In this document: one piece after another, positions 1-13,041 of the stretch
Layout: every line of letters begins with the position of its first letter
Numbering within the stretch: position 1 is the first letter of the stretch
DNA from: Penicillus capitatus
Taxonomy: Eukaryota; Plantae; Chlorophyta
DNA length: 64,000 nt
Assembly (NCBI GenBank): GCA_965649825.1
Contig: OZ287706.1
Coordinates: forward strand, 682,001 to 746,000
Direction of reading: 5' to 3'
Translations under genes and position numbers: made by a program
Notes under the pieces: generated by a model
Told to the model about the DNA's origin: nothing
The model's input: the letters and a program-made list of their open reading frames with translations, nothing else
Databases searched by the model: none

Positions 1-1868
1 TCTTCTCGAAATGTCGTCGTCGTCAGTGAGGTCGATAAGGAAAAGAAAGAGGCATTCACTGCTCCAAAGACGAACGGTCGTGGACGAAAGCCAGCTGCAG
101 GGTTAGAGGAACTTCGCGCCGTCCGGATCGACAAGGTAGATGTGCATCTCCGACGGGGACAGTGATCTGAATGGAGATGCTTGTTCAGATCGCACAGATG
201 CGTGCCACCGGAGAAGAGCCATTCGCCTACGCCTTCAGTCCAACCCACAAGACGAAGGAGCTTCAGTCCCTCTTCGCAGAACTCCCTAACGGAGAGGAGG
301 CACAAGTGGATGGCGGTGTCGTATATGTGGCAGGACGCGTCATGGCGTCGCGCTTCATGGGCAAGCTCGCCTTCATCGACATCGCAGACGAGAGTGGCTC
401 CATTCAGGTTGTCTGTCTCGACGAGAGGAATCGCGATCGAGACGAGAGGCCTCTAGTTGTACATAGAGAAGAGCCGTTTGGAAGAAGGACAGCCAGAGGG
501 CTACACCTTTGCCAAGAAGCTCGTGGATGTTGGCGACTTTGTCGGTGCCGCTGGCGGAATTAAGCGCACCGAGAAGGGAGAGCTCTCCGTGACGGCCACC
601 TCCATCAAGATCCTTTCCAAAGCCATTCGACCTCTTCCCGACAAGTTCCATGGACTGACAGACATCGAGAAACGGTGCGGAAGTGCCTGGTGAAACCTGT
701 CTGTTGTGACGCCTCTTGGATGACAGATATCGTCAGAGATATGTCGATCTGATCACCAATCCGTTCGTCCGAGACACATTCCGAATGCGCTCACACGTGC
801 TTTCCTTCGTGCGCCGTTATCTAGAGCAGCGCGATTTCATTGAGGTTAAGTGCTTTTAATCACGATCAAGCTTAAAATGTGGGTTCAGGTGGAGACTCCT
901 GTTCTTCAGTCGGTGGCCGGAGGAGCAGACGCTGATCCATTCGTCACATACCACAACTCATTGGATCGTTCATTCACGCTGCGCATCTCCACCGAGCTGC
1001 ATCTGAAGCGGCTAATCGTCGGCGGATTCGAACGTGTTTTTGAGATCGGACGCATTTTTCGTAACGAGGGCATCTCGACTCGGCACAATCCTGAATTCAC
1101 ATCCATCGAGCTGTATCAAGCCTACGCAGATTACACGGATATGATGCGTTTGACAGAAGAGCTGGTCAAGGCGTGTGTTCAAGAGATCCACGGCGGACTG
1201 AAAGTGACTTATGGGGATCGAGAGATCGATTTCTCAGTCCCTTTCAAGCGCGTATCCATGGCGGATGTGATCAGAGATGTCTGTCAGATCGATCTCGCCT
1301 CGTTTTCGAGCCTGTCCGCGGCAAAGCAGGCAGTCAAGGGCCAGCTGCAATCGATCCCTGGGTATTCTGAGAGCAAGATCGAGATGGCGGCTACGATGGG
1401 ACATCTCATGAATGAGGTGTTTGAAACGGCAGTGGAGGATCAGCTATGGCAGCCGACGATTGTGATGGATTATCCTGTCGAAGTGTCGCCTCTGGCCAAG
1501 ATGCATAGAACCAAGCCCGGCTTGACTGAACGCTTTGAGCTCTTCATTGCGGGACGCGAGTTGGCAAACAGTTTCACTGAGCTAACAGATCCTCTGGATC
1601 AAAGGCAGAGATTCGAGGAGCAGTCTGAACAGAAACGGAAGAAGATGTCGGAGGAAGACGCCGCCGATCCTTCAACCTGTCAAGTAGATTATATACGGAG
1701 GCGATCTCTGCGAGATTCTTGGTTCAGGTGGACGATGATTTCCTGACGGCCTTGGAGTATGGGATGCCACCGACAGGTGGAATGGGAATGGGGATCGATC
1801 GACTTGTCATGCTCCTGACGAACAGTCCGAGCATCAGAGACGTGATTGCCTTCCCTTTGCAGAAGTGA
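1..1868 (+). CDS. lysS: Class II lysyl-tRNA synthetase, organellar (bacterial-type), copy 1; 5' end lies before the window; about 5 introns
   Basis: Spliced translation gives the OB-fold [35 protein letters not shown], motif 2 [33 protein letters not shown] and motif 3 [32 protein letters not shown] introns include 137-189 and 675-726. Stop is TGA 1866-1868. Confidence 0.95.
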
Positions 1869-2900
1869 TAGACGTTAGACGACGATGCGATGTGACCAGA
1901 AGCGTATTTTGCACTTGCCAATCTTATCGACAGCGAATGGCTATGTCTCGAGAACGTGTCTCTATCGTTGCGAAAAGAGTTCCTCGATCTGCAGCTGAAG
2001 TTGCCCGAGGAACGTCATCTCTTCATCTTCGAGGACATTCAACGCAGCGTTGTCCTGCCCAAGCGTCACGTTGTCGTTGAAGTGCGAGGCTGTCATGCTG
2101 CTCTGCGGAACGTCCTGTATGCACGATCGATCTCTCACGATACATCCACGTGACCTCAGATGCTCACTGTGGATGGACCCGCAGGCCTTAGCCCGTCGCA
2201 AGACGTTTCTCGCGCCACGCGACGGTCAATAAGTGCGTTCATGATCGGCGAGCGATCCTTTACGGCTTTCTGAGCATGGACATTGAATGGCGCTCCGCGC
2301 GAGATGCTGCGACACTTGCCTTGGTGTCGAGATCGGGACGCTTTTTGCGCAGCTCTTTAAGAGCAGACGAGCTGAGCGATGTGTTCTGGAACGCATGTTT
2401 GATTTCGTAGAGTTGCCGCAGAGAGAGCGTGTTCACAGATCGCGGCAAATGATGCTTCTCTGCATTCAAGTTGAAGTACTGCCCACGGAACAGTCGACCG
2501 ACTTCCGTCTCGATCTCTCCCGTCTTATTCAGCCGGTCGAATACGGTGCACACAAGTCGGTTCAGCACCTCGTACAGTGTCTCGAAGAACGCCCTGAAAA
2601 GTTGCCCCATAACGGCGATGCGACTCAAACACTTGCTGCCTGTCTCTCTGAGGATTGGCGTGGCTTCCTTCTTTCAGAAGAATGCGTCCGTAGACAGCGC
2701 CGACGTCTTCGGTGAGCGCCGTCAGTCGTCGGTCTTCGAGTTCCTGTGTATCCTCTATATTGCCGAACCGGCGTTCATTGACGCAGAACAGACTCGGATG
2801 CTCGTTGCCGTCTGATTTGTATCGATGCCATCTGCAGGATGCACTTGGAGGCGACGGCGCTGCGTGCTGAGCCGTGCAATTTTGAATCTTGCGACGAAAT
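9..2900. repeat. Left arm of inverted duplication IR-A (partner 10610-13041)
   Basis: 9-694 is about 98-99% identical by eye to the reverse complement of 12357-13041, introns included. The LysRS catalytic exons and the downstream gene U align at lower identity with 10610-12350. Confidence 0.9.
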
Positions 2901-11100: not shown

Positions 11101-11171
11101 GGTATTCCGAGAAAAGAGAAATTGCAATAAATTGAGCTCCGCCACCACGTCGTACAGAATCCCATGGTTGT

Positions 11172-13041
11172 TCATCCCTGAAAAGGAAAAGCAATGACGT
11201 CCCTGATCGTAGGACTGTCTGTCAAGAGCATAACAAGTCGATCAACTCCAAATCCCATTCCCGCGGAGGGAGGCATCCCGTACTCCATAGCAGTCAAGAA
11301 ATCATCGTCCATCTTCATGGAATCCCACAATAAGACTCATACAGGCAACGATGGTCGACATACTTGATTAAGTGTTTCAAGATCTGAACCGTCGCCGTAA
11401 TCCATCGCTTTCGCTTTCTCCTGCCAATGTTTCTCAAGTCTTTGTCTTTGATCCAACGGATCCGTCATTTCTGAACAGCAATTCGCCAATTCTCGTCCAA
11501 CAACGTAAAGCTCAAAACGTTCTGTTGATCCAGGCTTGGATCGATGGATCCTCGCAAACGGCGATATCTCAATCGGGTATTCCGTCACAATCGTCGGCTG
11601 CCATAGCTGACCCTCCACTGCCGTTTCAAACACCTCGTTCATGAGATGTCCCATCGTAGCCGCCATCTCGATCTTGCCCTCAGAATACCCAGGGATCGAT
11701 TGCAGCTGGCCCTTGACTGCCTGCTTTGCTGCGGACAGACTCGAAAACGAGGAGAGATCGATTTGACAGACATCTCTAATCACATCTGCCATAGATACAC
11801 GCCTGAAAGGGACTGAGAAATCGATCTCTCGACCCCCGTACGTCATTTTCAGTCCGCCGTGGATCTCTTGAACACACGCCATGACCATGTTTTCAACGAG
11901 TGCCATCATATCTGAGTGATCGACGTAGGCTTGATACAGCTCGATGGATGTGAATTCCGGGTTGTGACGGAGCGAGATGTCCTCATTGCGAAAACTGCGT
12001 CCAAGTTCGAACACTCCATGAAATCCTCCCACCAGGAGCCGTTTTAGATACAACTCCGTAGAGATGCGTAGCATAAATGAACGATTCAGTGTGTTGTGAT
12101 GTGTCACAAAAGGATCTTCATCAGCACCGCCGGCGATGGATTGCAACATAGGAGTCTCTGCCTAGATACAAGCGATCTCTGTTTTCTAGTCACCCAATAA
12201 AAAGCTGACCTCCATGAATCCACGCTGCTCCAGGTAACGTCGCAGAAAGGAAATTGTTCGGGCACGGACTTTAAGGGTTTCCTTGACACTGGGATCGAGA
12301 ATGAATTCAACGCATCTCGGGTAATGTCTGCAAGAATAGAATCCTGACAAGTGATCTTCACCAGGCACTTCCGCACCGCTTCTCGATGTCTGTCAGTCCA
12401 TGGAACTTGTCGGGAAGAGGTCGAATGGCTTTGGAAAGGATCTTGATGGAGGTGGCCGTCACGGAGAGCTCTCCCTTCTCGGTGCGCTTAATTCCGCCAG
12501 CGGCACCGACAAAATCGCCAACATCCACGAGCTTCTTGGCAAAGGTGTAGCCCTCTGGCTGTCCTTCTTCCAAACGGCTCTTCTCTATGTACAACTAGAG
12601 GCCTCTCGTCTCGATCGCGATTCCTCTCGTCGAGACAGACAACCTGAATGGAGCCACTCTCGTCTGCGATGTCGATGAAGGCGAGCTTGCCCATGAAGCG
12701 CGACGCCATGACGCGTCCTGCCACAGATACGACGCCGCCATCCACTTGTGCCTCCTCTCCGTTAGGGAGTTCTGCGAAGAGGGACTGAAGCTCCTTCGTC
12801 TTGTGGGTCGGACTGAAGGCGTAGGCGAATGGCTCTTCTCCGGAGGCACGCATCTGTGCGATCTGAACAAGCATCTCCTTTCAGATCACTGTCCCCGTCG
12901 GAGATGCAGATCTACCTTGTCGATCCGGACGGAGCGAAGTTCCTCTAACCCTGCAGCTGGCTTTCGTCCACGACCGTTCGTCTTTGGAGCAGTGAATGCC
13001 TCTTTCTTTTCCTTATCGACCTCACTGACGACAACAACATT
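11172..13041 (-). CDS. lysS: Divergent lysyl-tRNA synthetase paralog, copy 2; downstream ORF intact but no in-frame start for the N-terminal extension; function uncertain
   Basis: Same intron positions as copy 1. Motifs [33 protein letters not shown] and [20 protein letters not shown]. Stop is TGA 11174-11172. An in-frame TAA at 13068-13066 lies upstream of the shared 5' tract. Confidence 0.8.

Follow-up and report, generated by a model that had tools for sequence, protein, structure and literature searches.

The window analysed here, a stretch of 64,000 nucleotides of contig OZ287706.1 from the green alga Penicillus capitatus, opens inside a gene for lysyl-tRNA synthetase (LysRS) and carries a second LysRS gene on the opposite strand. 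Our subject is this pair, whose members are nearly identical over some segments, diverged over others, and turned to face each other. An earlier account made from the letters alone, here called the sequence-only reading, had described two convergent LysRS genes about 9 kb apart, and their stop codons, at 1866-1868 (copy 1) and 11172-11174 (copy 2), do lie 9.3 kb from each other. Both genes encode an organellar, cyanobacterial-type class II LysRS; copy 1 is a conservative member, and copy 2 is divergent but intact. The features discussed below are collected in Table 1.

The window comes from a 954-kb contig (ctg340479, 41x coverage; loci L002, L003, L004 and L009) of the long-read metagenome assembly ENA ERZ25074695. 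A second contig of that assembly (ctg337992, 21x, 76 kb; loci L001, L005 and L008), hereafter the alternative contig, is from the same sample at half the coverage, is ~99% identical to the window and has both LysRS copies aboard. A related species is represented in a second metagenome assembly, ERZ26696514, by ctg303784 (146x, 1.096 Mb; loci L006 and L007), on which orthologues of copy 1 and copy 2 occur together, and by ctg303765 (202x, 914 kb; locus L010), which has an orthologue of copy 1. The copy 2 orthologue on ctg303784 shows 85% amino acid identity over exon 5. All of these contigs were recovered through exact-protein look-ups and one homology search, and 9.1 kb of the main contig was covered upstream of the window. 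The main contig runs 699 kb further upstream of the window, and an inverted arm produced as an artefact of a contig end is thereby ruled out.

Gene models were built by hand, with GT..AG introns. Inverted arms were taken from a repeat search of positions 1-16000 of the window, and the differences between them from a base-by-base global alignment. Synonymous and nonsynonymous divergence (dS and dN) follow Nei-Gojobori; distances between copies and between species were calculated per segment from seven aligned genomic LysRS sequences.

Table 1. Features of the LysRS pair and its surroundings, in window coordinates unless a locus is named
Feature	Position	Strand	Details
LysRS copy 1	1-1868	+	Exons 27-135, 189-407, 457-674, 727-844, 889-1683 and 1728-1868, including the stop codon
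LysRS copy 1, first exon and intron 0	Start ~100 nucleotides upstream of the window (L002 ~9022-9150)		Intron 0 of 46 nucleotides; MRTICTRHFPRATSPQLRWSTRVLCTTQPL...
LysRS copy 2	11172-13169	-	Exons 13169-13078, 13024-12916, 12862-12644, 12594-12377, 12327-12210, 12161-11364 and 11312-11172, including the stop codon
Older 5' conversion island	114-694 (mirror 12937-12357)		End of exon 1, introns 1-2, exons 2-3, first 20 nucleotides of intron 3
Second conversion island (patch B)	1166-1465 (mirror 11884-11585)		Variable insertion between motifs 2 and 3
Recent tract extension	19-113 (mirror 13032-12938)		This haplotype only; donor copy 1, acceptor copy 2
PP1 inhibitor-like gene (PF14895)	1900-3150	-	Downstream of copy 1; Pfam E = 2e-5, 24.3 bits, just under the cut-off of 25
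RidA (L-PSP) and RWD block	3332-5531		2.2 kb; Pfam L-PSP and RWD; carries the inversion breakpoints
Trypsin-like gene (PF00089)	9402-10269	+	In the spacer; adjoins copy 2 in both haplotypes and in the related species
PP1-inhibitor-like relic	10616-10908	+	72% identity to 2647-2944; frame broken
Degenerate DUF7912 gene copy	13229-14007	+	Head-to-head with copy 2; 71-99% mosaic against the intact gene at ~20.7-21.7 kb
Third LysRS 5'-end relic	20513-20676	-	Homologue of the ATG-bearing first exon, 52-nucleotide intron, ~25-35 nucleotides of exon 1

Two LysRS genes and their identity mosaic

Both genes begin with an exon of their own. A full leader had been placed upstream of copy 1 only, and this did not survive: the first exon of copy 2, 13169-13078, has its own ATG, encodes MTGILTRHFPRVPFRRLRRSERIRCTRQPKG, and is followed by a 53-nucleotide GT..AG intron that joins it in frame to exon 1 at 13024. 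The exon is confirmed by copy 1, by the related species and by the relic at 20.5 kb, and its ATG, donor and acceptor are kept in all seven LysRS sequences as well as in that relic (20676-20513). Such a conserved, ATG-bearing exon rules out a copy 2 lacking a start codon, as might be read from the frame of exon 1 (an upstream TAA and no ATG). In copy 1, the window itself opens within intron 0, of which positions 1-26 are the final 26 nucleotides. Both copies are thus complete, each with its own first exon, and copy 1 has no unique leader.

Five introns of 43-53 nucleotides occupy identical positions in the two copies, with introns 1-2 near-identical and introns 3-5 unalignable. The inverted arms, 10-694 and 12357-13041, are 685 nucleotides long and 98.4% identical, with 11,662 nucleotides between them. 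They differ at 11 alignment positions (15, 18, 118, 142, 172, 207, 242, 317, 325, 537 and 672), nine of which fall within 19-694 (~676 nucleotides, 98.7% identity). The near-identical first ~690 bp with about nine differences, as described by the sequence-only reading, is therefore borne out, and the alignment places the abrupt break in the third intron just where that reading had it, at 694 / 12357. At 694/695, 20 nucleotides into intron 3, identity drops from 98-100% to ~50%. Beyond the break, exons had been called diverged and introns unalignable; introns 3-5 cannot be aligned, as said, and silent sites in the diverged exon segments are saturated. Weaker inverted matches were found at 887-1146, 1156-1676, 1726-1862 and 2788-2909. 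Homology extends upstream of base 10 at ~57-67% identity, through intron 0 and the first exon outside the window, and reaches 2944 / 10616 downstream of the stop codons.

A second patch of high identity, placed earlier at about 1260-1455, does exist, but those limits were too narrow and take in only its best part. This patch B extends over 1166-1465 against 11884-11585, with 90-98% identity per 50-nucleotide window. It lies where the protein family is least conserved (38-51% identity to outgroups), so that selection on the protein cannot explain its identity between the copies. The 5' island, for its part, codes for the N-terminal helix and the OB-fold anticodon-binding domain.

Silent sites follow the same mosaic. 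Between copy 1 and copy 2, dS is 0.03-0.04 in the exons of the 5' tract; in patch B the values are 0.10-0.17 here and 0.05 in the related species. The two diverged blocks give dS values of 1.7 and 3.4 (saturated), with a dN of 0.22 and a dN/dS of ~0.1. Counted as sites, synonymous differences number 4 of ~128 in the tract against ~120 of ~170 in the diverged exons (Fisher p = 1.4e-36).

Both proteins qualify as class II LysRS of the bacterial/organellar type. Against TIGR00499 (lysS_bact), which has an equivalog cut-off of 427.6, copy 1 scores 638 bits and copy 2 561 bits, and the Pfam domains tRNA_anti-codon and tRNA-synt_2 were found on the called LysRS exons. Copy 1 can be aligned end to end with solved bacterial LysRS structures, and its best relatives are green-algal organellar LysRS, at 57-64% identity; by name, Ostreobium and Bryopsis come first, followed by cyanobacteria. 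The host genome is a nuclear genome of a green alga, and its nearest LysRS relatives are in Bryopsidales.

At positions conserved in at least 90% of the family, copy 2 departs at 26 sites and copy 1 at 2. Among the changes in copy 2 are RYRQRY to RHYPRC, FERVFE to FHGVFE (ER to HG in GGFERVFE), RNEG to RNED, and LANSF to LANCC. The last of these is F426C in E. coli LysS numbering, as read from the alignment, and the neighbouring residue is also Cys ('NCC'). By the same alignment, copy 2 appears to retain R262, E264, H270, N271, F274, E278, Y280, E421, N424, E428 and the Arg of motif 3, and copy 1 appears to retain GIDRL; the positions compared are catalytic residues of motif 2 and motif 3 and residues of the lysine pocket. 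In both copies the Arg of the widely conserved GGAxARPF is replaced by Asp (GGADADPF at 946-969, GGADEDPF at 12105-12082), a position at which Ostreobium, Bryopsis and two further relatives have Glu (GGADAEPF). The replacement, at an otherwise invariant position, was considered as a defect, but it is common to relatives and so is a feature of the lineage.

In the related species, the 'LANCCSEM' of copy 2 is conserved, as are most of the copy 2-specific substitutions. Over the diverged core, orthologues of copy 1 give a dN/dS (omega) of 0.035 (dN 0.016, dS 0.45) and those of copy 2 an omega of 0.12-0.13 (dN 0.064, dS 0.49-0.53). None of the seven LysRS sequences has a stop codon within its reading frame. 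That copy 2 is a pseudogene is ruled out by this omega, by frames intact in three sequences from two species, and by a hidden Markov model score above the cut-off. Copy 2 evolves about four times faster than copy 1 but is under purifying selection.

Two species, two haplotypes and two arrangements

Distances between the copies change their pattern along the gene. In exon 0 and intron 0, orthologues differ by 14.5% (copy 1) and 31-32% (copy 2), and within-species paralogues by 43-48%; over 695-1165 and 1466-1868, orthologues differ by 12-16% and within-species paralogues by 32-36%. Outside the islands, then, it is orthologues that group together, which places the duplication before the speciation. 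Inside the islands the pattern is the opposite. Over 171-694, sequences differ by 11-12% between species, and paralogues by 1.3-1.9% here and 4% in the related species; over 1166-1465, the corresponding values are 16-17%, 3-6% and 2.3%. Here it is the paralogues that cluster within each species, and the islands have thus been homogenised independently in each lineage.

The island edges are nearly the same in the two species. Ahead of patch B, dense differences stop at 1162 in both; past it, the first difference is at 1466 in this species, against 1464-1466 in the other. The 5' island gives way on its 3' side to dense differences, which set in at 695 in the window and at ~697-710 in the related species. 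Both species share the positions of the paralogue-specific differences on either side of the islands.

The 5' end of the island differs between the haplotypes. Over 19-170, the distance of copy 2 from copy 1 is 1.3% in the window and 21% in the alternative haplotype, with no difference between the two copy 1 alleles. Within sites 30-180, the two copies differ at 33 positions in the alternative haplotype and at 3 in the window; the acceptor, copy 2, has changed at 32 sites and the donor, copy 1, at none. Dense 5' differences end at 113 in the alternative haplotype (105 in the related species), so that the old island spans ~114-694 and the 19-113 of the window was added after the haplotypes split. 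This conversion replaced 14 residues of the N-terminal extension of copy 2 in the window.

Interlocus gene conversion is thus supported by three features: sequences cluster by species in the islands, silent sites and introns are homogenised together with coding sites, and the transfer is non-reciprocal. The sequence-only reading had allowed that passive conversion alone could explain the pattern, and this has gained strong support from the clustering in the islands and from a segment, 19-113, that is converted in one of two haplotypes. Allele sharing in patch B is mixed across this species' four sequences, as might be expected for repeated short tracts. Polymorphisms of copy 1 between the haplotypes had been considered as proof of ongoing conversion; this was dropped, because ordinary mutation explains them.

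Of note, the related species has extra short stretches of 94-97% identity on the upstream and the downstream side of both LysRS genes (L007 8194-8405 / L006 8115-8326; L007 11932-12093 / L006 11058-11221). These are further conversion islands and are not common to the species of the window.

The orientation of the pair differs as well. The main contig has the pair on opposite strands, copy 1 on + and copy 2 on -. The alternative contig has the two genes on its + strand with 34 kb between them, and in the related species a single strand carries both, at a distance of 25.7 kb. Collinearity of locus L001 of the alternative contig with the window extends from ~-2.1 kb to 5531, and resumes further upstream, beyond a long terminal repeat (LTR) retrotransposon; past 5531 the locus leads to Evr1 and TruB. 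Locus L005 follows the window from 22159 back to 3332, where it departs and leads to a CLAMP-domain gene. The block between these two limits, 3332-5531, occurs twice on the alternative contig, in inverted orientation, at 98.2% identity and ~28 kb apart. The breakpoints fall inside this pair of inverted repeats, and the two haplotypes have the segment in two orientations. Recombination between the two block copies would turn the alternative arrangement into exactly that of the window. The inverted segment measures ~28 kb on the alternative contig and ~23 kb without the retrotransposon, which is absent from the main contig.

The order from copy 1 to RWD, Evr1 and TruB is common to the alternative contig and both contigs of the related species. 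Because the alternative haplotype and the related species agree in the RWD-Evr1-TruB adjacency, the direct arrangement is the ancestral one and the convergent pair is derived. It had been proposed that the region flips through recombination between inverted repeats. This appears to be right, but the repeat is the RidA-RWD block and not the LysRS tract.

Several smaller differences were seen in the same interval. In the alternative haplotype, the LTR retrotransposon (L001 2092-7049, ~4.96 kb, with RVT_1, integrase and gag-aspartic protease) is inserted at a site that corresponds to ~2.1 kb upstream of window base 1; the contig of the window lacks it. With two 205-nucleotide LTRs that are 100% identical, and present in one haplotype only, it is a very recent insertion polymorphism. 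Near 4830, the RWD copy of the window is one base short relative to both RWD copies of the alternative haplotype, which splits an open reading frame (ORF) of 186 amino acids into two frames; this is either a real frameshift of the haplotype or a sequencing or assembly indel. A third RidA-like gene lies beside a globin gene between the LysRS copies (L006 16221-17690 against L008 1-368 and L002 1-39). This block apparently points the other way in the related species, a hint at further inversions in the interval.

Explanations for the pair

We are fairly confident that these are old LysRS paralogues whose islands have been kept alike by repeated gene conversion, that their convergent orientation came from a separate inversion through the RidA-RWD repeat, and that no switch is involved. 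In this account, an old segmental duplication, which took in the first exon and ended ~1 kb beyond the stop codon, took place before the split from the related species. The islands at ~114-694 and 1166-1465 have been overwritten repeatedly by non-reciprocal interlocus conversion, possibly through heteroduplex repair, independently in each species and in whichever orientation the copies lay. The islands end where paralogue-specific differences are old and dense; conversion may be unable to enter such poorly matching sequence, or selection may act against converting the diverged catalytic segments, or both. A more recent conversion of ~19-113, from copy 1 to copy 2, extended the 5' island in the haplotype of the window. 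Separately, an inversion of ~23-28 kb between the two inverted 2.2-kb RidA-RWD copies, presumably by non-allelic homologous recombination, turned copy 1 to face copy 2.

Certain points weigh against this account. The path through the 2.2-kb repeat, and thus the inverted arrangement, is the result of one assembler, and the predicted reciprocal junction would lie ~20 kb upstream of the window, beyond the 9.1 kb covered. The repeat in the window is a mosaic of the two copies of the alternative contig and not a clean two-part chimera, which would be compatible with later conversion but is no proof of a crossover. The two contigs may represent a single diploid, as its haplotypes, or else two strains. 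That the first exons are spliced as modelled, and that copy 2 is expressed, is presumed from conservation only.

The conversion part of this account has good precedent. Mosaic divergence through interlocus conversion has been described for tandem HMA4 copies in Arabidopsis halleri (bioRxiv 10.1101/2025.10.29.685298), for Caenorhabditis paralogues (PMC3966223) and for beta/delta-globin (PMC4041002). As in these systems, transfer at the LysRS pair is non-reciprocal, affects part of the gene, includes silent sites and introns, and has sharp edges; the effective rate varies along the gene, so that the copies look young in the tracts and old elsewhere. The present case differs in that the genes are a housekeeping pair of organellar aminoacyl-tRNA synthetases, and in that the copies are not tandem but lie 26-34 kb apart, or inverted and 9 kb apart. 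It also differs in having island edges kept in two species at a silent divergence of ~0.45-0.5, and a polymorphic tract extension caught in one haplotype. A literature search on conversion between LysRS paralogues found nothing relevant.

For the inversion, the closest parallels are a 24-kb 'flip/flop' region of yeast chromosome XIV, where inverted paralogues that are kept homogenised serve as the repeats (PMC9731477), and inversions in humans that arise when inverted repeats undergo non-allelic homologous recombination (PMC3961182). The likeness lies in a unique segment of ~23-28 kb between near-identical (98.2%), gene-bearing inverted repeats, in the presence of two orientations in one population or sample, and in breakpoints within the repeat. 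Unlike those systems, the present one is known from two haplotypes only and hence gives no evidence of re-inversion, its reciprocal junction lies outside the covered DNA, and the mediating repeat is RidA-RWD and not the LysRS pair.

Overall, the pattern is a new instance of known processes, and what is particular to it are the conserved island edges, the polymorphic tract and the retention of a divergent organellar LysRS. It offers a natural example of domain-specific concerted evolution in an essential translation enzyme, with edges held in two species, and of an inversion mediated by inverted repeats between two algal haplotypes, recognisable from metagenome contigs alone. It also carries a caution: paralogue ages, orthology calls and 'palindromes' taken from a single haplotype can mislead. 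The locus is useful as a teaching case, and the one new question that it raises is the role of copy 2.

One can envision, tentatively, that copy 2 is a neofunctionalised LysRS with a remodelled lysine pocket (F426C and its neighbours, conserved across species), whose core is shielded by selection from overwriting while its anticodon-binding and insertion domains evolve in concert with those of the canonical enzyme, so that the island edges mark a selected functional boundary; the inversion may in addition raise the rate of conversion. This is possible, but we would not rate it as probable. The last part of the proposal draws on the private 19-113 tract: because it sits in the inverted haplotype, the inversion may have raised the local conversion rate when it brought the genes together as a close inverted pair. 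If copy 2 were neofunctionalised, the two copies might divide the work between plastid and mitochondrion, or copy 2 might have a different substrate or some accessory activity. Arabidopsis OVA5 is a single LysRS serving chloroplast and mitochondrion. The pair described here is like the dual-targeted organellar LysRS of plants and green algae in being the same cyanobacterial-type class II enzyme with an N-terminal presequence. It is unlike a single dual-targeted enzyme in that two paralogues, with different presequences and catalytic cores, have been kept since before a speciation.

It could also be that the paralogues and islands are real but that both haplotypes are in truth direct, the inverted arrangement being an assembly path error between the 98%-identical inverted RidA-RWD copies. 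A wrong path through an inverted repeat would give exactly such an apparent inversion of the segment between; the inverted arrangement is known from an assembled contig, and the other arrangement is the one seen on the alternative contig and on two contigs of the related species. However, the repeat is only 2.2 kb long and its copies differ at ~1.8% of sites, and contigs of 0.95 Mb point to long accurate reads; such reads as a rule span and resolve a repeat of this size. For a continuous 954-kb contig to arise in this way, both junctions would have to be wrong. Moreover, the main contig stands apart as a haplotype of its own, ~1% divergent, to the left and to the right of the repeat, and it bears its own private conversion tract. 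We consider an error of this kind unlikely.

The proposal with which the pair was first described is a switch. Crossovers in the LysRS 5' tract would repeatedly invert the 11.7-kb spacer and so join the leader of copy 1, the full one, to either catalytic body, as a regulated or bet-hedging device. The topology is right, in that the tracts of the window's haplotype are inverted repeats of ~676 nucleotides with 98.7% identity, a possible substrate for non-allelic homologous recombination. Inversions do happen in the region, by way of another repeat, and the yeast flip/flop region works through homogenised inverted paralogues (PMC9731477). By this analogy, the LysRS arms of the window's haplotype might possibly serve as a substrate for further inversion.

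Several observations speak against a switch. With an ATG exon of its own in copy 2, there is no unique leader to be shared. In four haplotype contigs from two species, each first exon is linked to its own catalytic exons, and no leader-swapped LysRS was found among the recovered sequences of this small sample, in which exon 0, intron 3 and catalytic exons are parental. The haplotypes differ at breakpoints 3332 and 5531 and not within 19-694. With the genes in direct orientation, as in the ancestor, a crossover between the tracts would lead to deletion or duplication and not to inversion. The arms have diverged at 9-11 positions, and the older part of the tract was there before the inverted orientation, which is not the common state but derived and confined to this haplotype. 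No recombinase or transposase domain was called in the spacer ORFs and genes around the pair, from ~-9 to +22 kb, where the only domains called were tRNA-synt, L-PSP, RWD, trypsin, PP1-inhibitor-like and DUF7912. With no swapped junction, no recombinase and breakpoints elsewhere, the crossover switch is not supported, and we regard it as highly improbable.

The resemblance to the Hin, Gin and Cin invertases, the shufflons and the fim switch is that inverted repeats flank a segment whose inversion could swap the coding body behind a 5' end. Here, unlike in those systems, no recombinase gene was called, short specific crossover sites are lacking, no recombinant junctions were observed, and the genes are spliced nuclear genes of a eukaryote, complete in either orientation. 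A LysRS switch, if true, would be remarkable; the evidence points the other way. Duplication followed by conversion is a habit of the region and not a special device, judging by two further duplicate pairs in the window that resemble this one.

That the high-identity segments reflect strong purifying selection on conserved parts of the protein, with no exchange of sequence, has next to no chance of being right: the 5' island does encode a functional module, the anticodon-binding domain, but introns 1-2 and synonymous sites are as identical as replacement sites (dS 0.03), which rules selection out as the cause, patch B falls in the poorly conserved part of the protein, paralogues in the islands group by species, and one segment differs at 32 sites between haplotypes.

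Neighbouring genes and further duplications

On the side of copy 2, the ancient duplication has its outer edge at the PP1-inhibitor-like relic, which is homologous to the 3' part (2647-2944) of the PP1 inhibitor-like gene downstream of copy 1. The trypsin-like gene of the spacer has GDEGGP where its family has GDSGGP, so that the catalytic Ser is replaced by Glu; it is possibly an inactive protease homologue. In an exact-protein look-up, its ORF found a match on the main contig only.

Beyond copy 2, a module with a DUF7912 gene is duplicated in direct orientation (13229-14737 / 20716-22323), with stretches of 71-79% identity beside stretches of 95-99%. The gene copy beside LysRS copy 2 has deletions and broken frames, and the one at 20.7-21.7 kb is intact, with an ORF of 365 amino acids. 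Head-to-head with this intact gene lies the third LysRS 5' end (20513-20676), in which the start codon, GT donor, AG acceptor and a 3-nucleotide in-frame indel are all kept. This relic was carried along by the direct duplication of the DUF7912 module, and it may now serve as the first exon of a gene at ~19.7-20.4 kb.

Further along the window lies an inverted duplication of ~4.5 kb (31223-35743 / 53119-57718), with ~95% identity between its arms, a spacer of 17.4 kb and long ORFs on both arms. It is a possible further substrate for inversion.

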